A stretch of 64,000 bases of DNA from Macrostomum hystrix. Its lineage: Eukaryota > Animalia > Platyhelminthes. The notes beneath the pieces were generated by a model that saw nothing but the letters and a program-made list of their open reading frames with translations, ran no database searches and was not told the DNA's origin. The DNA lies in assembly GCA_950097015.1 (NCBI GenBank), contig CATNEN010000030.1, positions 1,116,001 to 1,180,000 on the forward strand. Reading direction: 5' to 3'. The translations under genes were made by a program, and so were the position numbers. This document shows, piece by piece, positions 12,457 through 49,600 of the stretch. How positions within the stretch are numbered: position 1 is the first letter of the stretch; each line of letters begins with the position of its first letter.

Positions 12457-12480
12457 CGCGGTATTGCAGCCTTGTCACAC

Positions 12481-12492: not shown

Positions 12493-12495
12493 ATT

Positions 12496-22700: not shown

Positions 22701-24968
22701 GCGTGGTAAAGTACCAGTAGAGACCCATGGATTTCCCGTGCGGCACAGCACGTACATACGAGCTAATAGCAGTTGAAAATATAATTTTTCTCATTGTTTG
22801 GTTTATAAAATGTTTATAAACGAAAAAAATGAGAACGGGGGTCGGTCTGACCCGACTGTCTCGACCTTGATTTGTAACTTCGATTCCCGCAAACTCCAAT
22901 AGAGGCTACAGATGTAGGTTCAGCGGCCTAATACTATCAAACTGCTCAGGTGCTTAATCTACAGAGAGGTCAATCACCCTTTTTGGTCTTCTTTAGACCA
23001 AAACAAAGGATTAGACATCGCAGAAGTGTCAATATAAGCCAAATTGCTCCCTTCGCTCATAGGCATTATCTCAAAGCTGATTGATTGATAGCTGGGAAAC
23101 TGATAATTACTAAGTATTGATATTGGGATAGCTTTTTGGGGCAGGGTCGAGATGAGCTGCTAGCCCGTGGGCTCTAGAGCGAAACACGTGAGGTCTTATC
23201 GCGTACCCAGAGGCGGTGGAATATTGCAGAATCCAAATTCCGAAAAAACACAACGCAATCCTTGGCAAAGCAGCCTACTGCTACCTTGTCCTGCTCGTAA
23301 TCCTCAACTCAATGGATTGTCGGTGACGTCGCTGTATTTTGGCTAACGACTCTTAGAACCCTTGTTAGCTTTCCGCCTTGTACAATCGTATTGCAAAGCA
23401 AATACGAGTTTTTGATTGGAAATCTTAAGTCGAATGGGCCGAGCCGTGCCAAGCAAATGGCACTTTCATGTCCAATTGATTGATCGACCTTTCCTCATCT
23501 TTCATTCGACTGAATTTGTGCCAAGCGGACAACGGACTAGGTTATAGTGCATGTGAGAAGCAGGAAGCCACTTTCTTTGGACTAAGTCATCGCTTCAGAA
23601 TTGTTTGTTTATTGCTAAAATCCAGAGCATTGTCTATATGAATTGTGTAATTATTAATTATTATTATTAAAACATGCCCGCTAACTATAGGTGCTGGTTT
23701 TTTTAATTGTTCTGACAATATTTTACTCGACAAAAGAAGAACATGAAAAAGCGAAGTTTTGTAAGAATTAACTATTGAGCTGGGAAGGGAAGAGAAAAGG
23801 TGTTAAAAATAAGAGCAGCAAAAGCACAAGAGACGCCTCGAATAAAAAAAAAATTTTAATAGCTTCAGGGCAGCTGTTCCCTAATTTTAGAGATTTCTAT
23901 GATGTACTTTGCTAAAGCATCAGTGGTTTCCCAATCGTCTTGTGCCATTATGTAGTTAGATTTCTCTTCTGCTGTTAAGGATGCGAAATAAGGAGATTTC
24001 CTAGAAATGTTCTTTTCAAAATAAGAACGTGTGGTGCTATACATATTCCAACTGTAAAAATATTCGCAGCTACCTGTCTCAACGGACCACTGGTTTTGGC
24101 CGCTAGCAAGCCGGAATACGTGGTAACAACAATCCTGGTGAGAAATACTTCAATTGCCAGTATTTGGCATATTGCTTCATGCTTCTATCTAAAAATAGAG
24201 AATAGAATAGTACCCTAGCCCAGTTGGGCCAGATGTACAGCAACGACCACTAGAAGTAGAAGGAAGGGAAACTACGTCTCTTATAGAAAAAGTTTGTTGT
24301 AAGTTATGTCAAAAGAAGAGCTTTGGATCTGCTTCTAATATGAAACAATCACCATCACCAAATATAAAAAAGTAGAATTTTCTTGCCGCGGTAGCGTATT
24401 TTTCGGCCAAAACCAGCCTACTAAACATTTTCTAAGAAGCGTAGTTTCTCGTCCTTCTACGAGACCATTTTGTCTTCCTTAAACTTTACTTCAGTACAAC
24501 TCAGTAGCTAAAACAGGTAGATGCACAAGCTTCAACTAAAATGTAGAGAATTTATTCTGCTTTCTCATGAAACAAACATTTTGAAAATACGAGCTATGTT
24601 GCACAATACGGAATAACTTAAGTTATTTGTGTTTTTGGTGCGTTAGAATTTCCTATCTGCCCAGTTTATTTTCGGGACAGCCAGTCAGCACATACTGGTC
24701 CGGAAAATGGGGGTTTAGCGGGGAGTTGTCCCTCCAGTTTCTAGATTCAGAGCTCCATGGCTCGATGAACTGAAGCACAGGAACTAAGTGTCGCGCTCAA
24801 AGATGCAAATAGTCTCCCTTTAGTTGAGATTCGAATTCCTGACCTCTTAGTTTGACTCCAACGCTTTAACTATTGGCTACAAGCTCTAAGTCATCTCTTA
24901 CTTATCTAGCGAGTCTGAGCCTAGATATGTCAGGAACTCGTAGTTCCCCTTCGATTTCTTTCCCACAG

Positions 24969-27318
24969 TCCGAAGCCTTCGCCACTCAGGACATCAACGG
25001 CCGCTGGGTCGGCTTCTTCCCAGACCTCATCACCGAGCTGTCGGACCGGCTAGGCTTCCGGCCGGACATCCGGCGAGTGCCAGACGGCCGGTACGGCGGC
25101 TTTGACAACGCCACCGGCCGCTGGGACGGCCTTATCGGCGAGGTGCACAGCCGGAGGGCTGACCTGGCTGCGGCTCCTCTTACTGTCACCGCCTACCGCG
25201 AGGAGGCTGTCGATTTCTCGCACGGGGTTCTGAACTTCGGCCTCGTGGTGGTGGCCCGACCGGCCAAGTGGGTCAACGTGGCTGTGCGCCGCGGACCAGC
25301 CTTCTTCCTGACGGTGTTCGACACCTGGGTCTGGCTGGCCTGTGGAGGCGTCTTGTTGCTAACCAGCCTGCTGCTGTACTGCAACTCTCGGTGCAACCCG
25401 CGCGAGCCGGAGGACCTTAACCTGTTTAGCGCCCTCTGCTCTGTCATTGGCACAGCCTGCTGTCATGGTGTGTGGGGCTCTTTTAAACATCATCGCAAAC
25501 AACGATGGGCAAACAACATCGGGAAAGAGTTAGAATCGGCTTCCAACTGACCAAATTGACCAATTTGAACAAAGGACTTTCTAAAAATGTTTTAATGCCA
25601 AATTAAGACAATGTATTCAATGAACCTCAGGTTATATAAAAAATATTACCTTTTTCTGTATGGCAAATCGTCTTCAGCCTTCCGAAATAGGGTTCATTAT
25701 GACATGATGAGTAGGGTATCACAATTAGAAACGCCGTCAGTGATACCATGGACTCATTATTAGCACGTGTACGATACGTGGACTTTTGACGTCAGTCACC
25801 CACAAACTCTGTCAGGTCCCACGAGTCGGCCGCGCTCTCTGGCCGGCCGCTGTCTGAGCACAGCCTGGTGGTTTTTCGCCGCAATCGCCGCAATCGCCTA
25901 CGCTGGCGGCTTCCTCTGCGCCCTAGTGGCCTCCGAGGGCTCCAGGTCGCGCCACATGTACGCCCCAATGATCAACATCCGGGATCGCTTCAGTGCCGAC
26001 CCCGACTACCTGAAAGACTTCACGCCGGCCTGGATCAAAGGCGGCAGCACCGATCATTTCTTTGCCACGGCAAAGGAGGGCCTGTTCCAGCAGTTCAACA
26101 GGAAGCACTTGGCCGCACTGCGCAAACGGCCTGAACTGCAGGTCTACTCAATGAAGGAACTCATCGGTCTGGTGCTGGCTGATACACAGGTACGTCGTCC
26201 AACTTACTTGTACATATGGCTAACAAACTAATGAGTAAATTCTGTAAATTTCAGAATCACAAGAGACAAAAATTACGGAAGCAAGCATTGATCTTAATTA
26301 AGTATATCGGTAGAAGATGCAGAACTATATAATTTATTTCTCGCAAATTAACAAACATCGGCAGGTACTGGCCGTGATGGAGGCACCAATGGCGGATTTC
26401 TTCGTGAAGAAGACCGACTGCGAGGTCATCGTGCTGGGTGACCTCACCAACGACAAGAGCTACGGCCTGGCGTTCGCGCAGAACTCCAGCCTGCTGGGCA
26501 GATTCAACCTGGAGCTGCTCCGAATGCGAGAGGAGGGCCGCGTGCTGGACATCTACAGGCGTTACTTCGGCTCACCTGGCAGCCTCTGCGGCACCAAGCT
26601 GGAGGCCTCGGCGCGCAGCCAGATCTCCGAGGTAGGTGACGTTCTGGCTAGGATGTTCCGCGGCAGCATCCCACTGACTTTGAAGAGCTTCTTCGGTCCC
26701 ATCGGTCTATACTTCGCCGGAGTCGGGCTGGGACTGCTGGCCTTCCTTGCTGACCTCGTCATTCACCACGGCTATGAAAAGACGCAGGTATGTTGCAGCA
26801 GAGGCACAAAAAAATTATATAATTTTTCAGCAAGGCTGTGGGCTATGGCACATCATTTTGTGAGTCTGGAAATTTGGAAGGAGCAGAAAGCCAATTATGC
26901 CCATTCCTCAAATCTTGAACACCCACGCACACAGATACAGTTCACAGTCACACACTCACAGGCAGGTACATCTGCCCTGATTTTCTGATTGTCAGGCATT
27001 GTAAACTTCCACTGGGGCTTTGACCCTCAAGGGCGTAAATCGCACAATGGCTTCGGTGCGGTATCGAGCTCAAGGACCTTGGTGCGAGAGGCAAACGCGT
27101 TTACCCCTTTAGCAGAGCTCGTATTAAATACTATTTTTTTCTTTATTGGGGACTTCACCTCGCCGAAGTCCGTTATCGCGTTTCGTTCCTTCTTCTAGGA
27201 AAAAATATATCGACCTTTTATGTTTCAGTCGAGCTCCAGTCAGCAGCCGAAGCAGCAGCCTCCGGAGGGCGCGTCTGGCGTCGCCCTGACAACGGCTGTA
27301 CCGCTAACCGAGGAGTGA
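24969..27318 (+). CDS. Divergent ionotropic glutamate receptor / IR-like channel, gene A; exons 24969-25467, 25816-26189, 26365-26787, 27229-27318; 5' exon(s) not identified
   Basis: S1 (GFFPDLITEL...WDGLIGEV...ADLAAAPLTVTAYREEAVDFS), M1, pore loop GTACCHG, M3, S2 (GGST, VMEAP, YGLAF), M4; all GT-AG junctions are frame-consistent; ends ...PLTEE*. Confidence 0.88.
27010..27110 (-). mobile_element. SINE family A, 5' head fragment in the last intron of iGluR gene A
   Basis: Reverse complement AACGCGTTTGCCTCTCGCACCAAGGTCCTTGAGCTCGATACC matches the family head. Confidence 0.6.
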
Positions 27319-27873
27319 AACAATATTAATCATGAGTCCTAATTGATTTTTGTGATTTATTGATTACTCATCTGGACGTTTTAGTCTACAACTAATTAAG
27401 AAAAAAATTGGGTTCGGGACAAGGATGCCTTGCACTGCTCTGGTTCAAAGAATGTAGCAAAAGCTTGCCTTCTATGTCCCTAAAGTTAGATTTTTAATGC
27501 TGGAAAATGTAGCTCAGCGATAATCAAAGCATCGATTTCATTGTAGGAATAACCGATTCATATATATTTTGCACCTATTTTAGCTCACAAGAGCAATGAA
27601 AAGTGCACTCAATGTCTTTAGGACTTTGATTCAAATGTTAAAAGCGTTCATTACACAGTTAGTCTATCGACACAATTACGCTCGTAAGATTGAATATGTT
27701 TTATACAAAACCGCACAATGAGCACATGCTTAATCAAATTTTTTATTTCAAATAAAAGTAAATAACTGCCTGGTACACTTTGGACACGATTAACTATATA
27801 GCCTTTTTCATTGTCTTAATGTATTAATGTCTAGATGTATAAGACAAAATTATTTTGTCTTCAAAATCAGTGC

Positions 27874-28039: not shown

Positions 28040-28602
28040 TAAAAACATATTCTATTGCAGACACTGATGGACAATTAAATTTCGTTAGGAGTCAGGAAAA
28101 CTAAACGATGGTTTACATTTTCAGACGGATTATTCTTTCGTTGAAAAAGAAGTAAAGGTAGAAACGTTTCCTGTAGCAGCTGGCCTACGATCCGGCACAG
28201 CGGGGTGCTGTTCTATTTCCTATTTGCTAAGTGCCAGAAGCTATTTGCAATTTGAACAGCAGCCAGTGTAACTAGCAGATCGGCGAAAGAAGAGCACCAT
28301 TTAGAAAAGAAGCAAATATAGTACACAGCAGAGACACAGGCCAGCGATATTTAAGTAAAGACACTGGCATCAGCAAAATAATTCTGTAGGCTCAAAATAG
28401 TTTGATTTTGCTGATTGAGTGCAGTAAGTTACTGGATCGGTAGCAATCGTTGCAGAATCTGCAAGCACAGCAAATAATAGTTGACAATCAACAGGTGCAA
28501 AAGCTAACACCTGCGAAAAAGCATGCAAAACTTTCTAATAAATTCAACGCAGATTCAAGTCGTTCTATAAGTCAGTACAAGTCACATCTGACAAGCTCAA
28601 GC

Positions 28603-31600
28603 ATGAGACTCATTCTGCTGGCTGCATGCACAGCGGTTCTCTGCACCCTTGTGGTAAGGCCTCAACTAGTTTTCCTCAATCTGAGATATAGGGGCACACG
28701 AGACGAATTCTATGCCCATCCTTGTCTCGATGTACCAAAAATAAACAACCATATTTGAATTTCAGCTATCAGCTCCGCCTCCAAATGCTGCAAGCAAGAT
28801 AAAGAAGCCTGCCGCCCAAGCTGCTACCAAGCCCGCTGCGCCCGCAGCGGCAGCGCACAAGCCTGCGAAGGCAGCAGAGCCCTGCAGGAGACCCGCAAGA
28901 AAAGAAAGCCGGGGACGACGCGACGAGAGACGAAGTCGTCACGACTCTCAAAGGCAAAACAGGCGCCACGGCAGACGATCCGACAGACGAGCCCGAAGAA
29001 GGCGCGATGTGAGACAGAGAAGCAACCGTCGTCGTGCTAGACGCAACCGCAGACGCTCCAACAGACGCTCAGCCAGACGTAACCGCAGACGCTCTGCCAG
29101 ACGCAACCGCAAGAGCCGCGATGTGAGAAAGAGAAGCAACCGTCGTCGTGCTAGACGCCACCGCAGACGCTCCAACAGACGCTCTGCCAGACGTAACCGC
29201 AGACGCTCTGCCAGACGCAACCGCAAGAGCCGCGATGTGAGAAGGAGAAGCAACCGTCGTCGTGCTAGACGCAACCGCAGACGCTCCAACAGACGCAACC
29301 GCAAGAGCCGCGATGTGAGAAAGAGAAGCAACCGTCGTCGTGCTAGACGCAACCGCAAGAGCCGCGATGTGAGAAAGCGAAGCAACCGTCGTCGTGCTAG
29401 ACGCAACCGCAGACGCTCCAACAGACGCTCTGCCAGACGTAACCGCAGACGCTCTGCCAGACGCAACCGCAAGAGCCGCGATGTGAGAAAGAGAAGCAAC
29501 CGTCGTCGTGCTAGACGCAACCGCAGACGCTCCAACAGACGCAACCGCAAGAGCCGCGATGTGAGAAAGAGAAGCAACCGTCGTCGTGCTAGACGCAACC
29601 GCAAGAGCCGCGATGTGAGAAAGAGAAGCAACCGTCGTCGTGCTAGACGCAACCGCAGACGCTCCAACAGACGCTCTGCCAGACGCAACCGCAAGAGCCG
29701 CGATGTGAGAAAGAGAAGCAACCGTCGTCGTGCTAGACGCAACCGCAGACGCTCTGCCAGACGCAACCGCAAGAGCCGCGATGTGAGAAGGAGAAGCAAC
29801 CGTCGTCGTGCTAGACGCAACCGCAGACGCTCCAACAGACGCAACCGCAAGAGCCGCGATGTGAGAAAGAGAAGCAACCGTCGTCGTGCTAGACGCAACC
29901 GCAAGAGCCGCGATGTGAGAAAGAGAAGCAACCGTCGTCGTGCTAGACGCAACCGCAGACGCTCCAACAGACGCTCTGCCAGACGTAACCGCAGACGCTC
30001 TGCCAGACGCAACCGCAAGAGCCGCGATGTGAGAAAGAGAAGCAACCGTCGTCGTGCTAGACGCAACCGCAGACGCTCCAACAGACGCAACCGCAAGAGC
30101 CGCGATGTGAGAAAGAGAAGCAACCGTCGTCGTGCTAGACGCAACCGCAAGAGCCGCGATGTGAGAAAGCGAAGCAACCGTCGTCGTGCTAGACGCAACC
30201 GCAGACGCTCCAACAGACGCTCTGCCAGACGCAACCGCAAGAGCCGCGATGTGAGAAAGAGAAGCAACCGTCGTCGTGCTAGACGCAACCGCAGACGCTC
30301 CAACAGACGCAACCGCAAGAGCCGCGATGTGAGAAAGAGAAGCAACCGTCGTCGTGCTAGACGCAACCGCAAGAGCCGCGATGTGAGAAAGCGAAGCAAC
30401 CGTCGTCGTGCTAGACGCAACCGCAGACGCTCCAACAGACGCTCTGCCAGACGTAACCGCAGACGCTCTGCCAGACGCAACCGCAAGAGCCGCGATGTGA
30501 GAAAGAGAAGCAACCGTCGTCGTGCTAGACGCAACCGCAGACGCTCCAACAGACGCAACCGCAAGAGCCGCGATGTGAGAAAGCGAAGCAACCGTCGTCG
30601 TGCTAGACGCAACCGCAAGAGCCGCGATGTGAGAAAGCGAAGCAACCGTCGTCGTGCTAGACGCAACCGCAGACGCTCCAACAGACGCTCTGCCAGACGC
30701 AACCGCAAGAGCCGCGATGTGAGAAAGAGAAGCAACCGTCGTCGTGCTAGACGCAACCGCAGACGCTCCAACAGACGCAACCGCAAGAGCCGCGATGTGA
30801 GAAAGAGAAGCAACCGTCGTCGTGCTAGACGCAAACCGCAGACGCTCCAACAGACGCAACCGCAAGAGCCGCGATGTGAGAAAGAGAAGCAACCGTCGTC
30901 GTGCTAGACGCAACCGCAAGAGCCGCGATGTGAGAAAGCGAAGCAACCGTCGTCGTGCTAGACGCAACCGCAGACGCTCCAACAGACGCTCTGCCAGACG
31001 CAACCGCAAGAGCCGCGATGTGAGAAAGCGAAGCAACCGTCGTCGTGCTAGACGCAACCGCAGACGCTCCAACAGACGCTCTGCCAGACGTAACCGCAGA
31101 CGCTCTGCCAGACGCAACCGCAAGAGCCGCGATGTGAGAAAGAGAAGCAACCGTCGTCGTGCTAGACGCAACCGCAGACGCTCCAACAGACGCAACCGCA
31201 AGAGCCGCGATGTGAGAAAGAGAAGCAACCGTCGTCGTGCTAGACGCAACCGCAAGAGCCGCGATGTGAGAAAGCGAAGCAAACCGTCGTCGTGCTAGAC
31301 GCAACCGCAGACGCTCCAACAGACGCTCTGCCAGACGCAAACGCAAGAGCCGCGATGTGAGAAAGAGAAGCAACCGTCGTCGTGCTAGACGCAACCGCAG
31401 ACGCTCCAACAGACGCAACCGCAAGAGCCGCGATGTGAGAAAGAGAAGCAACCGTCGTCGTGCTAGACGCAACCGCAGACGCTCCAACAGACGCAACCGC
31501 AAGAGCCGCGATGTGAGAAAGAGAAGCAACCGTCGTCGTGCTAGACGCAACCGCAGACGCTCCAACAGACGCAACCGCAAGAGCCGCGATGTGAGAAAGA

Positions 31601-34600
31601 GAAGCAACCGTCGTCGTGCTAGACGCAACCGCAGACGCTCCAACAGACGCTCTGCCAGACGCAACCGCAAGAGCCGCGATGTGAGAAAGAGAAGCAACCG
31701 TCGTCGTGCTAGACGCAACCGCAGACGCTCCAACAGACGCAACCGCAAGAGCCGCGATGTGAGAAAGAGAAGCAACCGTCGTCGTGCTAGACGCAACCGC
31801 AGACGCTCCAACAGACGCTCTGCCAGACGCAACCGCAAGAGCCGCGATGTGAGAAAGAGAAGCAACCGTCGTCGTGCTAGACGCAACCGCAGACGCTCCA
31901 ACAGACGCAACCGCAAGAGCCGCGATGTGAGAAAGCGAAGCAACCGTCGTCGTGCTAGACGCAACCGCAGACGCTCCAACAGACGCTCTGCCAGACGCAA
32001 CCGCAAGAGCCGCGATGTGAGAAAGAGAAGCAACCGTCGTCGTGCTAGACGCAACCGCAGACGCTCCAACAGACGAAACCGCAAGAGCCGCGATGTGAGA
32101 AAGAGAAGCAACCGTCGTCGTGCTAGACGCAACCGCAGACGCTCCAACAGACGCAACCGCAAGAGCCGCAATGTGAGAAAGAGAAGCAACCGTCGTCGTG
32201 CTAGACGCAACCGCAGACGCTCCAACAAGACGCTCTGCCAGACGCAACCGCAAGAGCCGCGATGTGAGAAAGAGAAGCAACCGTCGTCGTGCTAGACGCA
32301 ACCGCAGACGCTCCAACAGACGCTCTGCCAGACGTAACCGCAGACGCTCTGCCAGACGCAACCGCAAGAGCCGCGATGTGAGAAAGAGAAGCAACCGTCG
32401 TCGTGCTAGACGCAACCGCAGACGCTCCAACAGACGCAACCGCAAGAGCCGCGATGTGAGAAAGAGAAGCAACCGTCGTCGTGCTAGACGCAACCGCAAG
32501 AGCCGCGATGTGAGAAAGCGAAGCAACCGTCGTCGTGCTAGACGCAACCGCAGACGCTCCAACAGACGCTCTGCCAGACGTAACCGCAGACGCTCTGCCA
32601 GACGCAACCGCAAGAGCCGCGATGTGAGAAAGAGAAGCAACCGTCGTCGTGCTAGACGCAACCGCAGACGCTCCAACAGACGCAACCGCAAGAGCCGCGA
32701 TGTGAGAAAGAGAAGCAACCGTCGTCGTGCTAGACGCAACCGCAAGAGCCGCGATGTGAGAAAGCGAAGCAACCGTCGTCGTGCTAGACGCAACCGCAAG
32801 ACGCTCCAACAGACGCTCTGCCAGACGCAACCGCAAGAGCCGCGATGTGAGAAAGAGAAGCAACCGTCGTCGTGCTAGACGCAACCGCAGACGCTCCAAC
32901 AGACGCAACCGCAAGAGCCGCGATGTGAGAAGAGAAGCAACCGTCGTCGTGCTAGACGCAACCGCAGACGCTCCAACAGACGCAACCGCAAGAGCCGCGA
33001 TGTGAGAAAGAGAAGCAACCGTCGTCGTGCTAGACGCAACCGCAGACGCTCCAACAGACGCAACCGCAAGAGCCGCGATTGTGAGAAAGAGAAGCAACCG
33101 TCGTCGTGCTAGACGCAACCGCAGACGCTCCAACAGACGCAACCGCAAGAGCCGCGATGTGAGAAAGAGAAGCAACCGTCGTCGTGCTAGACGCAACCGC
33201 AGACGCTCCAAACAGACGCAACCGCAAGAGCCGCATGTGAGAAAGAGAAGCAACCGTCGTCCGTGCTAGACGCAACCGCAGACGCTCCAACAGACCGCAA
33301 CCGCAAGAGCCGCGATGTGAGAAAGAGAAGCAACCGTCGTCGTGCTAGACGCAACCGCAGACGCTCCAACAGACGCAACCGCAAGAGCCGCGATGTGAGA
33401 AAGAGAAGCAACCGTCGTCGTGCTAGACGCAACCGCAAGAGCCGCGATGTGAGAAAGCGAAGGCAACCGTCGTCGTGCTAGACGCAACCGCAGACGCTCC
33501 AACAGACGCTCTGCCAGACGCAACCGCAAGAGCCGCGATGTGAGAAAGAGAAGCAACCGTCGTCGTGCTAGACGCAACCGCAGACGCTCCAACAGACGCT
33601 CTGCCAGACGTAACCGCAGACGCTCTGCCAGACGCAACCGCAAGAGCCGCGATGTGAGAAAGAGAAGCAACCGTCGTCGTGCTAGACGCAACCGCAGACG
33701 CTCCAACAGACGCAACCGCAAGAGCCGCGATGTGAGAAAGAGAAGCAACCGTCGTCGTGCTAGACGCAACCGCAAGAGCCGCGATGTGAGAAAGCGAAGC
33801 AACCGTCGTCGTGCTAGACGCAACCGCAGACGCTCCAACAGACGCTCTGCCAGACGCAAACGCAAGAGCCGCGATGTGAGAAAGAGGAAGCAACCGTCGT
33901 CGTGCTAGACGCAACCGCAGACGCTCCAACAGACGCAACCGCAAGAGCCGCGATGTGAGAAAGAGAAGCAACCGTCGTCGTGCTAGACGCAACCGCAGAC
34001 GCTCCAACAGACGCAACCGCAAGAGCCGCGATGTGAGAAAGAGAAGCAACCGTCGTCGTGCTAGACGCAACCGCAAGAGCCGCGATGTGAGAAAGCGAAG
34101 CAACCGTCGTCGTGCTAGACGCAACCGCAGACGCTCCAACAGACGCTCTGCCAGACGTAACCGCAGACGCTCTGCCAGACGCAACCGCAAGAGCCGCGAT
34201 GTGAGAAAGAGAAGCAACCGTCGTCGTGCTAGACGCAACCGCAGACGCTCCAACAGACGCAACCGCAAGAGCCGCGATGTGAGAAAGAGAAGCAACCGTC
34301 GTCGTGCTAGACGCAACCGCAAGAGCCGCGATGTGAGAAAGCGAAGCAACCGTCGTCGTGCTAGACGCAACCGCAGACGCTCCAACAGACGCTCTGCCAG
34401 ACGCAACCGCAAGAGCCGCGATGTGAGAAAGAGAAGCAACCGTCGTCGTGCTAGACGCAACCGCAGACGCTCCAACAGACGCAACCGCAAGAGCCGCGAT
34501 GTGAGAAAGAGAAGCAACCGTCGTCGTGCTAGACGCAACCGCAGACGCTCAACAGACGCAACCGCAAGAGCCGCGATGTGAGAAAGAGAGCAACGTCGTC

Positions 34601-36124
34601 GTGCTAGACGCAACCGCAGACGCTCCAACAGACGCAACCGCAAGAGCCGCGATGTGAGAAGAGAAGCAACCGTCGTCGTGCTAGACGCAACCGCAGACGC
34701 TCCAACAGACGCAACCGCAAGAGCCGCGATGTGAGAAAGAGAAGCAACCGTCGTCGTGCTAGACGCAACCGCAGACGCTCCAACAGACGCTCTGCCAGAC
34801 GCAACCGCAAGAGCCGCGATGTGAGAAAGAGAAGCAACCGTCGTCGTGCTAGACGCAACCGCAGACGCTCCAACAGACGCAACCGCAAGAGCCGCGATGT
34901 GAGAAAGAGAAGCAACCGTCGTCGTGCTAGACGCAACCGCAGACGCTCCAACAGACGCTCTGCCAGACGCAACCGCAAGAGCCGCGATGTGAGAAAGAGA
35001 AGCAACCGTCGTCGTGCTAGACGCAACCGCAGACGCTCCAACAGACGCAACCGCAAGAGCCGCGATGTGAGAAAGAGAAGCAACCGTCGTCGTGCTAGAC
35101 GCAACCGCAGACGCTCCAACAGACGCTCTGCCAGACGCAACCGCAAGAGCCGCGATGTGAGAAGAGAAGCAACCGTCGTCGTGCTAGACGCAACCGCAGA
35201 CGCTCCAACAGACGCAACCGCAAGAGCCGCGATGTGAGAAAGCGAAGCAACCGTCGTCGTGCTAGACGCAACCGCAGACGCTCCAACAGACGCTCTGCCA
35301 GACGCAACCGCAAGAGCCGCGATGTGAGAAAGAGAAGCAACCGTCGTCGTGCTAGACGCAACCGCAGACGCTCCAACAGACGAAACCGCAAGAGCCGCGA
35401 TGTGAGAAAGAGAAGCAACCGTCGTCGTGCTAGACGCAACCGCAGACGCTCCAACAGACGCAACCGCAAGAGCCGCAATGTGAGAAAGAGAAGCAACCGT
35501 CGTCGTGCTAGACGCAACCGCAGACGCTCCAACAGACGCTCTGCCAGACGCAACCGCAAGAGCCGCGATGTGAGAAAGAGAAGCAACCGTCGTCGTGCTA
35601 GACGCAACCGCAGACGCTCCAACAGACGCTCAGCCAGACGTGTCCGCATAGGCACTGTCAGACGCAACCGCAAGAGCCGCGATGTGAGAAGGAGAAGCAA
35701 CCGTCGTCGTGCTAGACGCAACCGAAGACGCTCCAACAGACGCTCAACCAGACGTGTCCGCATAGGCACTGTCAGACGCAACCGCAAGAGCCGCGATGTG
35801 AGAAGGAGAAGCAACCGTCGTCGTGCTAGACGCAACCGCAGACGCTACAACAGACGCACAGCCAGACGTGTCCGCATAGGCACTGTCAGACGCAACCGCA
35901 AGAGCCGCGATGTGAGAAAGAGAAGCAACCATCGTCGTGCTAGACGCAACCGCAGACGCTCCAACAGACGCTCAGCCAGACGTGTCCGCATAGGCACTGT
36001 CAGACGCAACCGCAAGAGCCGCGATGTGAGAAGGAGAAGCAACCGTCGTCGTGCTAGACGCAACCGCAGACGCTCCAACAGACGCTCAGCCAGACGTCAC
36101 CGCAGACGCTCGGCCATGCCCTAA
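28603..36124 (+). CDS. Giant secreted arginine-rich repeat protein (~2,470 aa if the single-base indels are sequence errors); exon 1 28603-28653, exon 2 28766-36124
   Basis: ATG 28603 MRLILLAACTAVLCTLV|GTAAGG, spliced to TTTCAG|28766, is in frame with LSAPPPNAASKIKKPAAQ... and then with the RKSRDVRKRSNRRRARRN / RRRSNRRN / RRRSARRN repeats. The other two plus frames hit a stop in each long module. Variants between repeats are synonymous or conservative in this frame. Roughly 15-20 scattered 1-bp indels break the frame in 30800-35200; ends RRSAMP* at 36124. Confidence 0.8.
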
Positions 36125-37164
36125 AACACGCTAGCAGTTCGGTGATGTGATTTTAGATGTTGAGGCTTAAAAGATTTTGGCGCTAAAAATATACCAGCGT
36201 AAACTTTCTATTTGAACTTCGGCAATTAATACTAAATGTTCAAATTTTTCTTTTTTTTGTTATAAACTGCAAGAACGCGCTGTTCTTAGGATATTGTCGG
36301 AAACTGTTGCATATTTTTGAAGACGCGCGTTTGAGTCAAGAGGGTGAAGATGAATAATTATTTCTTTAACTTTTCTTTGTCGTTCATGTTGTTTCTTTAA
36401 GGTGGAGTCTGGTTAAACGCGGATTTGATTTTGGCAACAAAAAGGGCAACTAATATCTGCTTATATTTTGCGGATGAGACTGCAAAATTATTTTGCTAGT
36501 GCTGTTGGGAAGCAGAGAAAGTTAAGTGTATTATCCTAAGCGTAATTTAGCTGATTTCAGAGTAAATACGCTCGTATGTTGCGCACGCTAATATGTGGCT
36601 AGTAGAAATTATCAATTTCCTCCAAAGAGTTATAATGAACTTGATACCTAGCCAGTGCCGCTTATGAATCCCACTAATTCAAGCTTTGTACCCGTTTTCC
36701 GTATTTTGTTGCGGCGAGCATACCGATAGGAGGTTCGACTTAGAGCCAAAGTGCATATGCTTCTCGCATCAATGTCCCTGTGCTCGATTCTGCGGCGAGG
36801 CCAAATTTATGCACAAGGGCCATCCTACAATGGTGTGTCGCAGGGGTCGTTGGATCCTGGCTGTCCATTGCTCCCGGCGAAGCTGGTGTGACATTCTGAT
36901 GGTTGTCACACATGAAACTCTAAGCAGATAAAATACCTTATTTTTTTTATCCATTCGAGAATAAAATCTGAAATTAGGATCGCAATTCAATTTTTGAAAC
37001 CGGATGGTTCTCGACTCTTTTCGATGGACTTATCTCTAATTTGAGACAAGGGCCACTTTGGGAACCCATGCGCTATATCTATTCAATTAAGTTGCAAAAA
37101 ATAGCATTGACCACCGCAGCTTTCATCTTCCCTTCAGATGTCAGTCATCCCCAGCGTCTTCGTT

Positions 37165-38536: not shown

Positions 38537-41500
38537 CTAACTCCTAGGCGCCAGCTGTTGCTGATCATCCGAGAATGTGAGGGTGCCGAACGAGGCCTCT
38601 GTGACGGGCTCAGCCGGCTCTGGTGAGTTCTGCAACGGCTGGTTGCCCTGCTAAAACGGAGCGATGTTCGGGCGGTTCACACTTATAATGCAACTCTTCT
38701 CTACAATAATCCACTGTAAGCTACTAGCAGTAGTAATTAGAGATTTTAATCGGTTTATAGAGGACTCGAGTAGACCCAGCCCAGCTATGGTCCCTACCTC
38801 ACCCAATCACTTCGAGTGTATTCGATTAGGGTGAGGTACATTAGTATAAAAATGATAATTGGATTGCGATAAAACAAATCAATAATGTTTTGTCTTTTTA
38901 TTAGGGAATTATTAAAATCACACCTTTCTAATGACTAGGTGGATCAGTAATCAAACGAAGTGCTTAAGAGGGATGGGTCACGCATCTAGGACTAAAATAA
39001 TCACCACATTGCACGCGTAGCCATTTGATTTCCAGTTGATAAATAGGCTTTAATTGGAGTGCTGACATACGCTGTGTGCTTAGAATTATTTGTCTCTCGT
39101 TCAAAAGTGCATGTGTGCCTTTTAAGGACTTCTCAAAGTGGGCTCGCTGGTGTCACTCGTTCTTGCCTCGGAGTATTGGGACGAGTATGAATTGTCGAAT
39201 TCCTTATAGAGTGGATGGAGCGTGATTAGATGCAGACGTTGTTAATTTTCCATCTCCAAGAAGTCCATTTGTCAGTTGAGTGTCTCATTTTTGTTCTCCA
39301 TTGTATCCATTAATTGCATACTTTTAATAAACGCTAGTGTATGATTAAAGAAAAAACTTAAGAATTGATTACGATTTTTTTAATCTGACTAAATCCCTAA
39401 TTCCAATCACTGAATGAGCTGCATTCGAAGGTAAGCCAATTGTCTCTCTTTAGATGTACACTGACTAGCCATTCGATTCCATTCACTGTACATTCGAAGC
39501 TAAGCCTACTGTCTCTCCAGATGTACACTGGCTAGCCATTCGATTCCATTCACTGTACATTCGAAGCTAAGCCTACTGTCTCTCCAGATGTACACTGGCT
39601 AGCCATTCGATTCCATTCACTGTACATTCGAAGCTAAGCCTACTGTCTCTCCAGATGTACATAGCTCAATTTCATTCAGTGTACATTCGAAGCTAAGCCT
39701 ACTGTCTCTCCAGATGTACACTGGCTAGCCATTCGATTTCATTCACTGTACATTCAAAGCTAAGCCTACTGTCTCTCCAGACGTACACTGGCTAGCCATT
39801 CGATTTCATTCACTGTACATTCGAAGCTAAGCCTACTGTCTCCCCAGATGTACACTGGTTAGCCATTCGATTCCATTCACTGTACATTCGAAGCTAAGCC
39901 TACTGTCTCTCCAGATGTACATAGCTAAATTTCATTCAGTGTACATTCGAAGCTAAGCCTACTGTCTCTCCAGATGTACACTGACTAGCCATTCGATTCC
40001 ATTCACTGTACATTCGAAGCTAAGCCTACTGTCTCTCCAGAAGTACATAGCTCAATTTCATTCAGTGTACACTCGAAGCTAAGCCTACTGTCTCTCCAGA
40101 TGTACACTGGCTAGCCATTGAATTCTAAATTCGAGGCATGCCAACCTTGTATCGCTCGTATCGCGTGAAGATGTATATATCGGCCAGAGCGGCAGATGCG
40201 GACAGTAGCAGGCTGGCAAAGTAGAACAGCACTGGACCGGAGAAGCTGTGCAGGGTCAGCGGCAGGCAGCTGCGGAACATGCGCGCCATCTCTTCGCCTG
40301 CCAAGCTCATGGCAACCTATGATAAAAATTACGATAAGAACTTCAAGCACCCGCTGTTAAAAAACTAAAAGTTATTGACATGTAGCTCGCTTAACAAGAA
40401 TGTTGAAACGAGTATCAACATAGAAACGAATATTTCAATTTTTTACTGCCAATAAATTTCATACTTTTCGAAAATCGTCTAAGCTAAAAACAAAATAGCT
40501 ACGTTAAATATGTACTAATGTATGATCGAACAATGGAATGGGTTGAGCGATTGTTACGCAAACTATATTTGATCTAAAATCAGAAATAATATAATTCAAT
40601 GGGTTGTAGCCAAGGAGTTAGAGCATCCGACTCTCGACTTGAAGGTCGAAGGTTCGATTCTCGACTCCATTTGAACAATTTGTGTCCCTTTGCAAGACAA
40701 TTTTAATTCTGCATTGCTTCAGTTCACCCAGCTGTTACGGATGGGTGCCAGCGTTAGCTGGGTAACTGAGGGTGGGTGTGGCGTCCCCGCAGTCCATGGA
40801 CTGAACAGCCGTATGTAGCATTCAGATGCGCCGCGCAATAGCCGCGGCTGTGCTGTCGGCTGCGCTCTGGCTCCGTTGGGGCAGTCGCCATTAACTTAGC
40901 ATTATTGTATCTGCCATAGTTATTTGGGTAACTTAAAAACATTAACTCCGAGGACGTCGGAAATGGACGAAATGCATTGGCTGTAAATTCGTTTCAATGC
41001 TGGTTTTCTCTTGACACAAATATTCATTCGGGAGGGTGAGTAGCAACACCGGTCAAACGCGTTTGCCTCTCGCACAAGGTCCCCAAGCTCGATTCCGCAG
41101 TGAGGCCACATTAACTTTGGGTGCAGCCGCAGAGAGAAAGCTTACTCGTATCGTGCAATTTACTCGAGGGCCAACCACCAGGGCACAGTAAAAGTGTACA
41201 CTGCCTGACGATGAGAAAGTCAAAGGGCAGAAGTACACACCTGTATGAGCGTATGCCTGCGTACAGTATCTGACTTTCGTGTCAGATCTCGTGGGAGTGT
41301 GTGCTCAGGAGTCAGCGAAATGGGCTGAATTGCCTCAATCGAGGGCTGCGGGTCTAGTGTCACCAAATGATGTGCCATTGCCCGCAGCCCTCATGCAAAT
41401 ATTATTTTTATTAAAACATTCATACTACTTTTAATTGAGAATTTTTTAATAAAATGGTTGTTACCGTCTCCGCAGGCGGCAAGCTCTGCCAGCAGGGCCC

Positions 41501-44186
41501 GCTGCCCATCAGGATGTTCTTCACGTAGGAGCTCCTGATGAAGCCGGACTCTCTCAGCTGAAGTATTACCTCGTTGAACGGGCGCAGCCATTTGGAGCCG
41601 CTCTTGAATGCGAAGGCGTAGCTTCGATCGTTGACGAGATTTGCCGCGGCGATTAGCTCGCAGTCGCCAGCTCGGGTGTAATAGTCGGCCATGGCCGATT
41701 CCATCACGGCGAAGTAGCGATCGTCAGTCTTGACGAGCTGCAGCAGTGACTCCACGGACTTCACACTGGCCAGCTTGGGATTCTCTCGCAGGCCGTTCTG
41801 GTACTGCTTGTAGAACATCTGCAGCACCGGATCGCTGGCCTTCTCGAAGAAGGCATTGGTGCTGCTTTTTGCCAGCCAGACCGGCGTGGCGCCCTTGAAG
41901 GAGTCGGCACCGACCGGCTTGATGTCCGGAATGTCTTCGATCCCGAAGTGACGCTCCAGGCCGCCGCGGCTGGCCACCAGGTTGCAGATGAAGGCTGCCA
42001 GGTACGAGGCGGCAAAGGCGCACGAGAACAGCCACCAGAATGCGCTGAGACTGCGGCCAACCAGCGACTGCGGCGAGCGGCGATAGCCTTTGACAAAGCG
42101 AGGAGGTTTTAAAAGTCCTTAAAACCGTGTCTAGAAAAAATGGTGCTCTGACTTAAGTCGAAAGTAACGCATACAGCCATATACAATATCCTTCTGTAGT
42201 CATGCAGAGCCGGTCCCATTGTTATTCTGTAGTCATACAGAGCCAGTCCCATTGTTATTCTGTAGTCATACAGAGCCGGTCCCATTGTTATTCTGTAGTC
42301 ATGCAGAGCCAGTCCCATTGTTATTCTGTAGTCATACAGAGCCAGTCCCATTGTTATTCTGTAGTCATACAGAGCCGGTCCCATTGTTATTCTGTAGTCA
42401 TGCAGAGCCGGTCCCATTGTTGTTCTGTAGTCATACAGAGCCAGTCCCATTGTTATTCTGTAGTCATACAGAGCCGGTCCCATTGTTATTCTGTAGTCAT
42501 GCAGAGCCAGTCCCATTGTTATTCTGTAGTCATACAGAGCCAGTCCCATGGTTATTCTGTAGAGTGACCCACACCTCTATAGCAAGCACCAATGAGTCTC
42601 ACCCTGAAAGCAGCCAGTGCTGACAGCATAGAACAGGCTGCCCAACAGAGAGAAGTCGTTCATTTGGGCCAGGAGGCTGTGGCTGATGAGCGTGTTGCGT
42701 GTATTGTGCTCGGCCTGACGGGCGCGAAACTCGCGCGGATTGTAGCGATCGTTGAGGAACAGAAAAAGTCCAGTCAGGATGAACACCACGATGCAGGCGC
42801 ACCAGACACCGGCGTCAAACACGCTGAGGAAGAAGGTGACGCTGCGGGTCACCTGAGATAATGGCACGACAGAACTTTTAGCTAGACTAGCAATGCATTT
42901 ACCTGTAGCTAACAAAGCGAATAGACTAGCAATCCATTTACCTGTAGCTAACAAAGCGAATGGACTAGCAATCCATTTACCTGTAGCTAACAAAGCGAAT
43001 TGACTAGCAACCCATTTACCTGTAGCTAACAAAGCGAATGGACTAGCAATCCATTTACCTGTAACTAGCAAAGCGAATGGACTAGCAACCCATTTACCTG
43101 TAGCTAACAAAGCGAATGGACTAGCAATCCATTTACCTGTAACTAGCAAAGCGAATGGACTAGCAATCCATTTACCTGTAGCTAACAAAGTGAATGGACT
43201 AGCAATCCATTTACCTGTAGCTAACAAAGTGAATGGACTAGCAACCCATTTACCTGTAGCTAACAAAGTGAATGGACTAGCAACCCATTTACCTGTAGCT
43301 AACAAAGCGAATTGACTAGCAACCCATTTACCTGTAGCTAACAAAGCGAATGGACTAGCAATCCATTCACCTGTAGCTAACAAAGCGAATGGACTAGCAA
43401 TCCATTCACCTGTAGCTAACAAAGCGAATGGACTAGCAATCCATTTACCTGTAACTAGCAAAGCGAATGGACTAGCAATCCATTTACCTGTAACTAGCAA
43501 AGCGAATGGACTAGCAATCCATACTAGCTGTGGTGCCGCATTAACTCACTAACTTGCATGTCTGATGTTTAGTGTACTTGATTTCTTATTTCTTATTTCC
43601 AATGTGCGTAGCTTGTACTCGGGGCACGTTTCTTGTGCTCAGGTTTGTAACGTGCGGTCGCGCTATCTTGTAAGTGGTACGTTGCCACCAGCCCTTTCTT
43701 TAGCGGGTTATACAGGCTGGTTAAGGCCTTTAAATAAAATCATGGATCTAAAGTGGTCGCCTTGCTACGGCACGACACTAGCAATGTCAATTATCTGTAA
43801 TCCATTTACCTGTAGCTACCTATGCGAGTAGACTAGCTATCCATTTACCTGCTTTATGATAGATTTATGTTTACCTGATTGCTCCATCGTGGTTTTCGCA
43901 CCACCACAGTCAGGCCGACATCCAGGTACTCGTGCGAGAAGTCGATGAAATTCTCTCTATGCGAGGTTGCTATCAGAGGCGCGGCCGCAAATTCAGCTTG
44001 GCCGTTTATGACGTCTCCAATCAGGCCGCTCCAATTGCCAGTTTGCTGGTCGTAGGCGCCGAACCGACCATCGGCGACCATAGTGAATTTGGGCTCAAAT
44101 TTCAGTCTCCGGCCGATCTCGCGGACCAGGTCGGGCACGAAGCCGAACCAGGCGCCCTGCTTGTTCAGCATGCAATAGCCCTCCAC
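38537..44186 (-). CDS. Divergent ionotropic glutamate receptor / IR-like channel, gene B; exons 44186-43875, 42852-42603, 42087-41465, 40316-40146, 38650-38537; 5' exon(s) not identified
   Basis: S1 (GFVPDLVREI...WSGLIGDV...AEFAAAPLIATSHRENFIDFS), M1, pore STGCFQG, M3 SYLAAFICNL, S2 (KSST, VMESAM, YAFAF), M4 region RMFRSCLPLTLHSFSGP homologous to gene A RMFRGSIPLTLKSFFGP; junction phases are consistent; the last exon is less certain. Confidence 0.86.
39422..40119. repeat. 67/59-bp tandem repeat (CATTCGAAGCTAAGCCTACTGTCTCTCCAGATGTACA...), ~11 copies, intronic
   Basis: Read directly from the sequence; long and short unit variants are interspersed. Confidence 0.9.
40607..40760 (+). mobile_element. 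tRNA-derived SINE, family B, with a CORE-like central domain
   Basis: GTAGCCAAGGAGTT (A-box-like) ... GGTTCGATTCT (B box), then GTCCCTTTGCAAGACA...TGCTTCAGTTCACCCAGCTGT...ATGGG, resembling the conserved CORE-SINE domain. Confidence 0.6.
41034..41410 (+). mobile_element. SINE family A, near full-length copy in an iGluR gene B intron
   Basis: Collinear with 5193..5540 from AACGCGTTTGCCTCTCGCAC to CAGCCCTC and the AT-rich tail. Confidence 0.75.
42193..42562. repeat. 33-bp tandem repeat (CTGTAGTCATACAGAGCCAGTCCCATTGTTATT), ~11 copies, intronic
   Basis: Read directly from the sequence. Confidence 0.92.
42884..43521. repeat. 39-bp tandem repeat (GACTAGCAATCCATTTACCTGTAGCTAACAAAGCGAATG), ~16 copies, intronic
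   Basis: Read directly from the sequence; diverged copies extend toward 43860. Confidence 0.92.
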
Positions 44187-44850: not shown

Positions 44851-46288
44851 TCTAGTTCATTTAGAAACTGAATATCTACCTCTAGTTCATTTAGAAACTG
44901 AATATCTACCACTAGTTCATTTAGAAACTGAATATCTACCTCTAGTTCATTTAGAAACTGAATATCTACCTCTAGTTCATTTAGAAACTGAATATCTACC
45001 TCTAGTTCATTTAGAAACTGAATATCTACCTCTAGTTCATTTAGAAACTGAATATCTACCTCTAGTTCATTTAGAAACTGAATATCTACCACTAGTTCAT
45101 TTAGAAACTGAATATCTACCTCTAGTTCATTTAGAAACTGAATATCTACCTCTAGTTCATTTAGAAACTGAATATCTACGTCTAGTTCATTTAGAAATTG
45201 AATATCTACCTCTAGTTCATTTAGAAACTGAATATCTACCTCTAGTTCATTTAGAAACTGAATATCTACCTCTAGTTCATTTAGAAACTGAATATCTACC
45301 TCTAGTTCATTTAGAAACTGAATATCTACCTCTAGTTCATTTAGAAACTGAATATCTACCTCTAGTTCATTTAGAAATTGAATATCTACCTCTAGTTCAT
45401 TTAGAAATTGAATATCTACCTCTAGTTCATTTAGAAATTGAATATCTACCTCTAGTTCATTTAGAAACTGAATATCTACCTCTAGTTCATTTAGAAACTG
45501 AATATCTACCTCTAGTTCATTTAGAAACTGAATATCTACCTCTAGTTCATTTAGAAACTGAATATCTACCTCTAGTTCATTTAGAAACTGAATATCTACC
45601 TCTAGTTCATTTAGAAACTGAATATCTACCTCTAGTTCATTTAGAAATTGAATATCTACCTCTAGTTCATTTAGAAACTGAATATCTACCTCTAGTTCAT
45701 TTAGAAATTGAATATCTACCTCTAGTTCATTTAGAAACTGAATATCTACCTCTAGTTCATTTAGAAACTGAATATCTACCTCTAGTTCATTTAGAAACTG
45801 AATCTACCTCTAGTTCATTTAGAAACTGAATATCTACCTCTAGTTCATTTAGAAACTGAATATCTACCTCTAGTTCATTTAGAAATTGAATATCTACCTC
45901 TAGTTCATTTAGAAATTGAATATCTACCTCTAGTTCATTTAGAAATTGAATATCTACCTCTAGTTCATTTAGAAATTGAATATCTACCTCTAGTTCATTT
46001 AGAAATTGAATATCTACCTCTAGTTCATTTAGAAACTGAATATCTACCTCTAGTTCATTTAGAAACTGAATATCTACCTCTAGTTCATTTAGAAACTGAA
46101 TATCTACCTCTAGTTCATTTAGAAATTGAATATCTACCTCTAGTTCATTTAGAAATTGAATATCTACCTCTAGTTCATTTAGAAACTGAATATCTACCTC
46201 TAGTTCATTTAGAAATTGAATATCTACCTCTAGTTCATTTAGAAATTGAATATCTACCTCTAGTTCATTTAGAAATTGAATATCTACT
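44851..46288. repeat. 30-bp tandem repeat (TCTAGTTCATTTAGAAACTGAATATCTACC), ~48 highly homogeneous copies
   Basis: Read directly from the sequence; mainly one C/T variant and one 2-bp deletion at ~45800. Confidence 0.95.
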
Positions 46289-46684
46289 TCCAGTTCGTTC
46301 ATAGATTTTCGGACTGGCCATTGGGTCCATAGTTGAAGTGTAATACAAAGTCAATCATCAGTATACCACCCCAGCCTAACTGTGCAGGTGTACAATACAC
46401 TAAGCTTTTCACATCGGTAATGAATGGATCGCGCAGATGTTAATTAGCGGTCCTTCCACATGCGATTCCGGTACTGCAGATCCCATAACTGACTGCAAAA
46501 GGAAGTGAAACTGCTAATTTCACAAATCCTGAAAAATATAATAATTGCTCATCGTTGAGTAGCATAACTACGGAGGACGCGTGCAAATTGTAGACTGAGT
46601 CGAATCCGCCATAGCCTAGTGGGGAAGAGGAAATTGCTTCCTGACAAGTACGCATCCTCCTTTTTCTAGCCGCGAATAATCCCC

Positions 46685-49600
46685 TCCCTCTCCTCCATCA
46701 CAATCTCCCCTCTGTCTTTTCTCTCTCCTCCTTCACCATCTCCCCTCTGTCTTTTTTCTCTCCTCCTTCACCATCTCCCCTCTGTCTTTTTTCTCTCCTC
46801 CTTCACCATCTCCCCTCTGTCTTTTTTCTCTCCTCCTTCACCATCTCCCCTCTGTCTTTTCTCTCTCCTCCTTCACCATCTCCCCCCTGTCTTTTCTCTC
46901 TCCTCCTTCACCATCTCCCCTCTGTCTTTTCTCTCTCCTCCTTCACCATCTCCCCTCTGTCTTTTCTCTCTCCTCCTTCACCATCTCCCCTCTGTCTTTT
47001 CTCTCTCCTCCATCACCATCTCCCCTCTGTCTTTTCTCTCTCCTCCATCACCATCTCCCCTCTGTCTTTTCTCTCTCCTCCTTCACCATCTCCCCCCTGT
47101 CTTTTCTCTCTCCTCCATCACCATCTCCCCTCTGTCTTTTCTCTCTCCTCCATCACCATCTCCCCTCTGTCTTTTCTCTCTCCTCATTCACCATCTCCCC
47201 TCTGTCTTTTCTCTCTCCTCATTCACCATCTCCCCTCTGTCTTTTTTCTCTCCTCCATCACCATCTCCCCTCTGTCTTTTCTCTCTCCTCCATCACCATC
47301 TCCCCTCTGTCTTTTCTCTCTCCTCATTCACCATCTCCCCCCTGTCTTTTCTCTCTCCTCCTTCACCATCTCTCCTCTGTCTTTTTTCTCTCCTCCTTCA
47401 CCATCTCCCCTCTGTCTTTTCTCTCTCCTCCTTCACCATCTCCCCTCTCTCTTTTCTCTCTCCTCCTTCACCATCTCCCCTCTCTCTTTTCTCTCTCCTC
47501 CTTCACCATCTCCCCTCTGTCTTTTCTCTCTCCTCCATCACCATCTCCCCTCTCTCTTTTCTCTCTCCTCCTTCACCATCTCCCCTCTGTCTTTTCTCTC
47601 TCCTCCATCACCATCTCCCCTCTGTCTTTTCTCTCTCCTCCTTCACCATCTCCCCCCTGTCTTTTCTCTCTCCTCATTCACCATCTCCCCCCTGTCTTTT
47701 CTCTCTCCTCATTCACCATCTCCCCTCTGTCTTTTCTCTCTCCTCATTCACCATCTCCCCCCTGTCTTTTCTCTCTCCTCCATCACCATCTCCCCTCTGT
47801 CTTTTCTCTCTCCTCCTTCACCATCTCCCCTCTCTCTTTTCTCTCTCCTCCTTCACCATCTCCCCTCTCTCTTTTCTCTCTCCTCCTTCACCATCTCCCC
47901 TCTGTCTTTTCTCTCTCCTCCATCACCATCTCCCCTCTGTCTTTTCTCTCTCCTCATTCACCATCTTCCCCCTGTCTTTTCTCTCTCCTCCTTCCCCATC
48001 TCCCCTCTGTCTTTTCTCTCTCCTCCTTCACCATCTCCCCTCTGTCTTTTCTCTCTCCTCCATCACCATCTCCCCTCTGTCTTTTCTCTCTCCTCCTTCA
48101 CCATCTCCCCTCTGTCTTTTCTCTCTCCTCCTTCACCATCTCCCCTCTGTCTTTTCTCTCTCCTCCTTCACCATCTCCCCTCTCTCTTTTCTCTCTCCTC
48201 CTTCACCATCTCCCCTCTCTCTTTTCTCTCTCCTCCTTCACCATCTCCCCTCTGTCTTTTCTCTCTCCTCATTCACCATCTTCCCCCTGTCTTTTCTCTC
48301 TCCTCCTTCCCCATCTCCCCTCTGTCTTTTCTCTCTCCTCCTTCACCATCTCCCCTCTGTCTTTTCTCTCTCCTCCATCACCATCTCCCCTCTGTCTTTT
48401 CTCTCTCCTCCTTCACCATCTCCCCTCTGTCTTTTCTCTCTCCTCCTTCACCATCTCCCCTCTGTCTTTTCTCTCTCCTCCTTCACCATCTCCCCTCTCT
48501 CTTTTCTCTCTCCTCCTTCACCATCTCCCCTCTGTCTTTTCTCTCTCCTCCATCACCATCTCCCCTCTCTCTTTTCTCTCTCCTCCTTCACCATCTCCCC
48601 TCTGTCTTTTCTCTCTCCTCCATCACCATCTCCCTCTGTCTTTTCTCTCTCCTCCTTCACCATCTCCCCCCTGTCTTTTCTCTCTCCTCATTCACCATCT
48701 CCCCCCTGTCTTTTCTCTCTCCTCATTCACCATCTCCCCTCTGTCTTTTCTCTCTCCTCATTCACCATCTCCCCCCTGTCTTTTCTCTCTCCTCCATCAC
48801 CATCTCCCCTCTGTCTTTTCTCTCTCCTCCTTCACCATCTCCCCTCTCTCTTTTCTCTCTCCTCCTTCACCATCTCCCCTCTCTCTTTTCTCTCTCCTCC
48901 TTCACCATCTCCCCTCTGTCTTTTCTCTCTCCTCCATCACCATCTCCCCTCTGTCTTTTCTCTCTCCTCATTCACCATCTTCCCCCTGTCTTTTCTCTCT
49001 CCTCCTTCCCCATCTCCCCTCTGTCTTTTCTCTCTCCTCCTTCACCATCTCCCCTCTGTCTTTTCTCTCTCCTCCATCACCATCTCCCCTCTGTCTTTTC
49101 TCTCTCCTCCTTCACCATCTCCCCTCTGTCTTTTCTCTCTCCTCCTTCACCATCTCCCCTCTGTCTTTTCTCTCTCCTCCTTCACCATCTCCCCTCTCTC
49201 TTTTCTCTCTCCTCCTTCACCATCTCCCCTCTCTCTTTTCTCTCTCCTCCTTCACCATCTCCCCTCTCTCTTTTCTCTCTCCTCCTTCACCATCTCCCCT
49301 CTCTCTTTTCTCTCTCCTCCTTCACCATCTCCCCTCTGTCTTTTCTCTCTCCTCCATCACCATCTCCCCTCTCTCTTTTCTCTCTCCTCCTTCACCATCT
49401 CCCCTCTGTCTTTTCTCTCTCCTCCATCACCATCTCCCCTCTGTCTTTTCTCTCTCCTCCTTCACCATCTCCCCCCTGTCTTTTCTCTCTCCTCATTCAC
49501 CATCTCCCCCCTGTCTTTTCTCTCTCCTCATTCACCATCTCCCCTCTGTCTTTTCTCTCTCCTCATTCACCATCTCCCCCCTGTCTTTTCTCTCTCCTCC

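Follow-up and report, generated by a model that had tools for sequence, protein, structure and literature searches.

Repeat proteins rich in lysine and arginine (K/R) have been described in the adhesive systems of several flatworms. In Theama mediterranea, adhesion protein 3 (Tmed-ap3) is found in adhesive cells of the tail and consists of a signal peptide and a domainless K/R repeat with a GRKHS motif; its 3,700 aa include 1051 lysines and 880 arginines (K+R ~52%) (PMC9229212). In the proseriate Minona ileanae, RNA interference (RNAi) against Mile-ap3 removes the electron-dense core of the adhesive vesicles (PMC6745481). In Macrostomum lignano, the K/R-rich sequence of Mlig-ap1, more than 3,600 aa in all, passes through the secretory pathway and was proposed to bind polyanions; heparin blocks adhesion, which the authors credit to binding to the KR regions of Mlig-ap1 (PMC6410801). 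The function of the K/R regions in flatworm glue has been called enigmatic (PMC9229212, PMC8621496), and ap3 was reported not to be found in macrostomids (PMC9229212). Here, we describe a two-exon gene for an arginine-rich repeat protein in a 64,000-nt stretch of the Macrostomum hystrix genome (GenBank assembly GCA_950097015.1, contig CATNEN010000030.1, positions 1,116,001–1,180,000 of the forward strand; hereafter the window). The gene is real, and we think it probable that it is functional and encodes a secreted, disordered polycation that helps to condense a gland secretion or hold it together, on the model of ap3 and the KR arms of Mlig-ap1.

The exon structure (Table) was compared with RNA contigs aligned to window positions 28300–29120; of the sequencing runs, which carry no tissue labels, three (X1–X3) belong to one study and the fourth (X4) to another. 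The contigs of X1 and X2 (starts at 28581 and 28590) skip exactly the 112-nt intron, which begins with GTAAGG and ends with TTTCAG, and leave the intron and the upstream DNA uncovered; the contigs therefore represent RNA. The X3 contig covers the linker of exon 2. The in-frame splicing of a 17-codon signal-peptide-like exon at 28653/28766, which a preliminary description of the window had predicted, is thus found in two runs. A TATA-like site at 28566 was discounted because only 15 nt separate it from the most upstream base found in RNA, and no canonical AATAAA was found within 375 nt at the 3′ end of the gene.

Table. Features of the arginine-rich gene in window coordinates.
Feature	Position	Strand	Remarks
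5′ leader, transcribed	28581..28602	+	28581 is the most upstream base in an RNA contig (X1 start); no upstream coverage; the real start may differ
Coding exon 1, 17 codons	28603..28653	+	n- and h-region of the signal peptide
Intron, 112 nt, phase 0, GT..AG	28654..28765	+	skipped in X1 and X2 contigs; zero depth inside
Exon 2 start	28766..29002	+	end of the signal peptide, K/P/A-rich linker, Cys57, irregular Arg-rich lead-in
Indel-free 5′ part of array, 610 codons	29003..30832	+	units of 54/78/90/114 nt
Central array with 17 single-base indels (10 insertions, 7 deletions)	30833..35164	+	probably consensus errors
Indel-free 3′ part of array, C-terminus, and TAA	35165..36124	+	four variant units with Val/Ile/Gly/Thr insert
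Stop codon TAA	36122-36124	+	after the unique C-terminus (…SAMP)
Possible poly(A) region	36224..36260	+	variant hexamers AATTAA (36224) and ACTAAA (36231), then a T-rich tract

The contigs reach position 28985 and differ from the window by 3 G>A changes in ~270 bases, one of which (28814) is Ala34Thr and two of which (28888 and 28927) are synonymous. Because X1, X2, and X3 carry the same 3 differences, the transcript would stem from a different allele or strain or from a close paralogue. Contigs of the repeat itself have depths of hundreds to thousands, values that cannot rank genes by abundance. In the dominant ones, a codon is changed to the synonymous GTC and 3 nt are deleted in frame (29069); neither change occurs in the window, and an Arg>Ser variant that is likewise absent from the window is among the abundant contigs on 29003–29120. 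Since the dominant RNA variants are missing from the window, more abundant sister genes should exist. Run X4 yielded head-to-tail repeat units with the 3-nt deletion, which, together with the variants absent from the window, suggests expressed paralogues or an orthologue. No second copy of the unique 5′ or 3′ parts of the gene is present within the window.

The repeat array comprises 86 units (29003 to 36124) and ends in TAA; it is preceded by 96 residues that include exon 1, the linker, and the lead-in. All unit lengths (54, 78, 90, and 114 nt) are multiples of 3 and reflect an 18-residue core (RDVRKRSNRRRARRNRKS) with add-ons of 4 or 8 residues. The core contains 9 Arg, 2 Lys, and 1 Asp, and the 8-residue modules contain 5 Arg each, so that both the order of linker and modules and the module compositions given in the preliminary description agree with our counts. 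In the 4 terminal 114-nt units (35564–36019), a Val-Arg-Ile-Gly-Thr-Val block stands in place of an Asn/Arg/Ser/Ala block. Nowhere else is the mature chain as hydrophobic, and this C-terminal block may be a separate interaction region.

Several properties of the array indicate that it is coding. On the plus strand, frame +0 alone is open, with 50–55% Arg, and the other 2 frames have a stop in every unit; an Arg content as high as that observed arose in 1/5000 and 0/5000 base shuffles. Within the open frame, Arg is specified by 5 different codons (CGC 440, AGA 373, CGT 230, CGA 16, and AGG 5), and Lys is nearly always AAG (137/138). The variants seen in RNA (the GTC codon and the 3-nt deletion) keep the frame. 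The most widespread repeat variant (AGA/CGA, ~20 units) is synonymous; when each separate event is counted once, synonymous changes show no clear excess, and they lend modest support to coding.

In the assembly, the spliced frame runs into a stop at codon 731 (nt 30905), and the 2,468-aa product is a read-through model with an X at each of the 17 breaks. The giant protein of ~2,470 aa and >50% Arg that had been proposed thus holds as a model (51.9% Arg) but not as a continuous open reading frame (ORF); similarly, the ORF list, said to have missed the gene, lacks the spliced start but does include the fragments 29009–30907 and 35234–36124. Comparison of the breaks with the rest of the window revealed that (i) 16 of the 17 indels make a base run longer or shorter, and each of the 10 insertions repeats the adjacent base (P about 3e-4); (ii) no indel occurs in the first 1830 nt or the last 960 nt of the array, beside the unique flanks (P about 2e-4 if indels were uniform); (iii) private substitutions number 0 in the indel zone and 7 in the array flanks, which is the opposite of neutral decay; and (iv) 5 non-coding arrays of the window, used as controls, contain 292 substitutions and 1 single-base indel, so that true variation in tandem arrays here occurs by substitution. 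For these reasons, the 17 indels are likely assembly or sequencing errors, and the full length of ~2,470 aa, which depends on this, is likely as well. Because the control arrays show that the assembly is not noisy overall, the cause of such errors must be local; a possible example is a low depth of usable reads deep inside a multi-copy repeat 7 kb long that paralogues also carry.

If the indels were instead real, this copy would be truncated or decaying and would encode a protein of no more than 730 aa with 48% Arg, with the RNA coming from a sister copy. The stop at codon 731, the 3 fixed differences of the RNA, the dominant repeat variants found outside the window, and the recurrence of one deletion 3 times in the array would all be accounted for, and the almost indel-free state of the other arrays speaks against a generally noisy assembly. 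However, decay should add substitutions faster than indels, yet no private substitution lies in the indel zone; the last 960 nt are clean again, with an in-frame stop at their end; and the indels bear the run-length signature of long-read error. We regard a truncated or decaying copy as unlikely.

The read-through protein has a mass of ~320 kDa and a net charge of +1365, with 51.9% Arg, 13% Asn, 11.7% Ser, and 6.9% Lys (K+R 58.9%), only 0.2% each of Gly and His, and one aromatic residue. In its leader, a basic n-region precedes a hydrophobic core of 15 residues (Kyte-Doolittle mean over 11 residues as high as 2.8) and a c-region of small residues, and by the −3/−1 rule the signal peptide is probably cleaved after Ser19. 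As previously stated, Cys is confined to the N-terminal region (residues 9, 14, and 57), and Cys57 is the sole Cys of the mature chain. No later 19-residue window has a hydropathy above 0.1 that would indicate a membrane anchor, and the protein contains no N-glycosylation sequon. With a charge of 0.56 per residue and a hydropathy of 0.16, compared with a folding boundary of 0.62, the chain lies deep in the disordered zone of the charge–hydropathy plot and is predicted to be intrinsically disordered. It contains 285 RS/SR dipeptides and 165 basic-basic-X-Ser/Thr sites.

Homology searches were performed with exon 2, and the joined spliced model served for composition only. A phmmer search with the linker and first unit, akin to the BLAST of the linker suggested in the preliminary description, found no homologue among 1.84 billion representatives. 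The word-indexed search with the first 689 aa of exon 2 (residues 1–110 and the whole piece scored) found no relative among proteins of 0.55–1.75 times the query length, a range in which a 2,400-aa relative would be missed. No relative was found in the ESM Atlas, no match in the PDB, and none among metagenome contigs searched by protein and by DNA pattern. In Pfam, residues 1–689 of exon 2 matched no family, and beyond them the same repeat continues to the stop; in particular, no H1 globular or protamine domain was detected. The earlier view that the protein has no folded domains is borne out by the Pfam and PDB results.

Taken together, the RNA junction, the signal peptide, the lack of any later hydrophobic segment, the disorder values, and the precedent of ap3 support a secreted, disordered polycation, as had been proposed from the DNA. 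What is observed is an exon that resembles a signal peptide and its splicing, the composition, and a lack of domains and membrane segments, and we infer the steps from entry into the endoplasmic reticulum (ER) onward. The signal peptide would direct the chain into the ER, and the protein could then be stored in dense-core granules in complex with polyanions such as sulphated glycans or acidic or phosphorylated proteins. After release, multivalent guanidinium binding to the anionic glycocalyx, the substrate, or partner proteins would yield a gel or glue, which a competing polyanion could loosen; dimerization via Cys57 is conceivable. Within this proposal, we place about one third of our expectation on the adhesive gland and the rest on rhabdite/mucus or reproductive (prostate, cement) glands. 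The literature searched offered nothing relevant on Arg-rich histochemistry of rhabdites or on a protamine in Macrostomum, and an Arg-rich basic protein in eosinophilic gland granules of flatworms is therefore not counted as evidence here.

Four points weigh against a functional, secreted, cohesive polycation. First, the RNA differs at 3 of ~270 bases and its top repeat variants are absent from the window, so that the copy expressed may be a different one. Second, the indel rate is 2.4/kb in the Arg array, compared with ~0.1/kb in the other arrays of the assembly. Third, the motifs of ap3 do not occur in the protein (0 GRK, 0 GRKHS, and 0 SRK), and the searches made showed no homology to ap proteins. 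Fourth, no phenotype was detected after knockdown of Tmed-ap3.

A secreted chain of this composition could also be a precursor that proprotein convertases cut into many cationic peptides of 10–33 aa with roles in defence, cell penetration, or signalling, a polyprotein alternative already raised in the preliminary description. The whole protein has 172 R-X-[K/R]-R sites, full furin-type digestion and trimming would give repeated peptides of 9, 16, 21, and 25 residues, and some cleavage in vivo would be hard to avoid. The sites are, however, rarer than composition predicts: the repeat contains 169, compared with ~404 expected. With the 38-aa unit taken once, 3 furin-type sites are present where 6.6 are expected (P=0.02; for the 18-aa core, P=0.19, not significant), and the longest basic run is 3 residues, compared with 6.1 expected (P=0.016). 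Dibasic processing would produce mostly scraps of 1–7 residues; Gly amidation signals are absent from the main modules, only 2 G-basic-basic sequences occurring in the whole protein; and with its single aromatic residue the chain has none of the amphipathic, hydrophobic faces typical of lytic peptides. If the sequence shows any bias, it is toward short basic runs and little cleavage. Such a repeat fits an intact structural polycation, and the peptide precursor, now weakened, seems to us improbable.

A protamine-like sperm nuclear protein, or a precursor of one, is a very unlikely alternative. The likeness to protamines and sperm nuclear basic proteins lies in the abundance of Arg (52%, near protamine composition), the Arg clusters with adjacent Ser (RS/SR dipeptides), the disorder, and a K/P/A linker that we take to resemble a histone H1 tail. 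By contrast, the first exon of our gene is a hydrophobic signal peptide spliced on in RNA, Pfam recognizes neither an H1 globular nor a protamine domain, and basic runs in the regular modules do not exceed 3 residues. Protamines are nuclear and lack a signal peptide, and they are small, with 60–80% Arg (PMC3073880), whereas the protein described here would have ~2,470 aa, and 730 aa even as assembled; given its signal-peptide exon and its far larger size, we do not consider it a protamine.

That the array is a non-coding minisatellite lying by chance behind a short spliced exon, as the many minisatellites of the window and the frame broken as assembled might suggest, has a negligible probability and is largely refuted by the RNA junction and the shuffle tests, since shuffling does not reach the Arg-rich open frame with its 5 Arg codons, and units whose lengths are all multiples of 3 continue the frame of the spliced signal peptide and are abundant in RNA.

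The gene is flanked by convergent ionotropic glutamate-receptor-like paralogues, one at 24873–27320 (plus strand) and the other at ~41420–44186 (minus strand); their ligand-binding exons are 47% and 43% identical, and minisatellites lie within introns of the minus-strand copy. A second convergent pair, of ankyrin plus Mab-21/cGAS-like genes, lies at 1331–4499 (plus strand) and 12705–16033 (minus strand) and shares a 1.19-kb tract of 99.4% identity; the ESM Atlas match for the Mab-21/cGAS-like gene is of the animal Mab-21 type. The genes around the array thus point to an animal genome; an exact look-up of six ORFs of the window gave no match, and a search with a nearby exon returned no homologue. 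A long terminal repeat (LTR) retrotransposon at 8152–12756, with identical 262-nt LTRs (8152–8413 and 12495–12756), gag of 274 aa, and pol of 1063 aa, reads as a very young insertion. Non-coding minisatellites occupy 44851–46296 (30-nt units), 46688–51525 (35 nt; strongly pyrimidine-skewed), 52012–52753 (18–62 nt), 56249–57975 (29 nt), and 60005–60822 (30 nt). Fragments at 54567–55393 (plus strand) resemble, by eye, RNase H and the C-terminal Cys/His part of a non-LTR retrotransposon, and 54929–55390 has no Pfam match. A short ORF at 58382–58780 (plus strand) contains a (CAG)n poly-Gln tract and is possibly an exon of a regulatory gene.

A secreted polycation of this kind would be relevant to the fields of bioadhesion and secretion, and its proposed function is easy to test, the unique 5′ probe region making the gene a clean target for RNAi and in situ hybridization. 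It would offer a natural model for arginine-driven underwater coacervation. Clusters of positive charge can arrest ER translocation (PMC4791137), and the protein would likewise be a model for the passage of ~1,450 basic residues through the translocon. Such genes are invisible to trypsin proteomics and easily masked as satellites, and gland secretomes probably under-count them. Macrostomids were reported to lack stand-alone polycations of the ap3 type (PMC9229212), and the gene described here would be an Arg-based, domain-free version. A broader proposal, which we put forward tentatively and hold to be doubtful, is that secreted Arg/Asn/Ser repeat polycations that stand alone and reach ~2,500 aa form a family in flatworms of the Macrostomum type and arose independently of GRK-type ap1/ap3. 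An apparent limit of 3 on basic runs and an apparent scarcity of furin sites would let such chains pass intact through the ribosome, the Sec61 channel, and the Golgi; as an arginine coacervate, they would make up the core of a gland granule, whether of glue, rhabdite, or ejaculate, that still awaits molecular description.

Comparison with the known flatworm proteins places the gene as follows. No sequence homology to ap3 or other ap proteins was found in searches limited by length windows and low-complexity filtering, ap3 not having been compared directly. An NRKSR 5-mer common to the antigen of the Mlig-ap1 antibody and the core module (83 copies) was set aside as non-significant (P=0.06). 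Mlig-ap1 likewise has long K/R-rich sequence, but a CTL-vWD-C8-TIL-EGF core, absent here, lies between its KR arms. Mile-ap3a/b are, like our protein, stand-alone K/R-rich repeat proteins, and the part that Mile-ap3 plays in the dense vesicle core is the one we propose, by analogy, for our protein; Mile-ap3, however, is built of GRK repeats. Tmed-ap3 shares with the protein described here the signal peptide, the giant domainless low-complexity repeat, a similar K+R content (~52%, compared with 58.9%), and the appearance as fragments in transcriptome assemblies; however, Tmed-ap3 is dominated by Lys, rich in Gly and His, and tail-specific, whereas our protein is dominated by Arg (52% R, 7% K) and rich in Asn and Ser. 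Because the GRK motif is absent and no homology was seen, we do not class the gene as ap3; as far as its sequence tells, it is ap3-like by design. Since this design has a precedent in ap3, it is less unprecedented than the preliminary description implied; the gene can be read as an Arg/Asn/Ser version of the secreted giant polycation of flatworms, an architecture already known from published examples.

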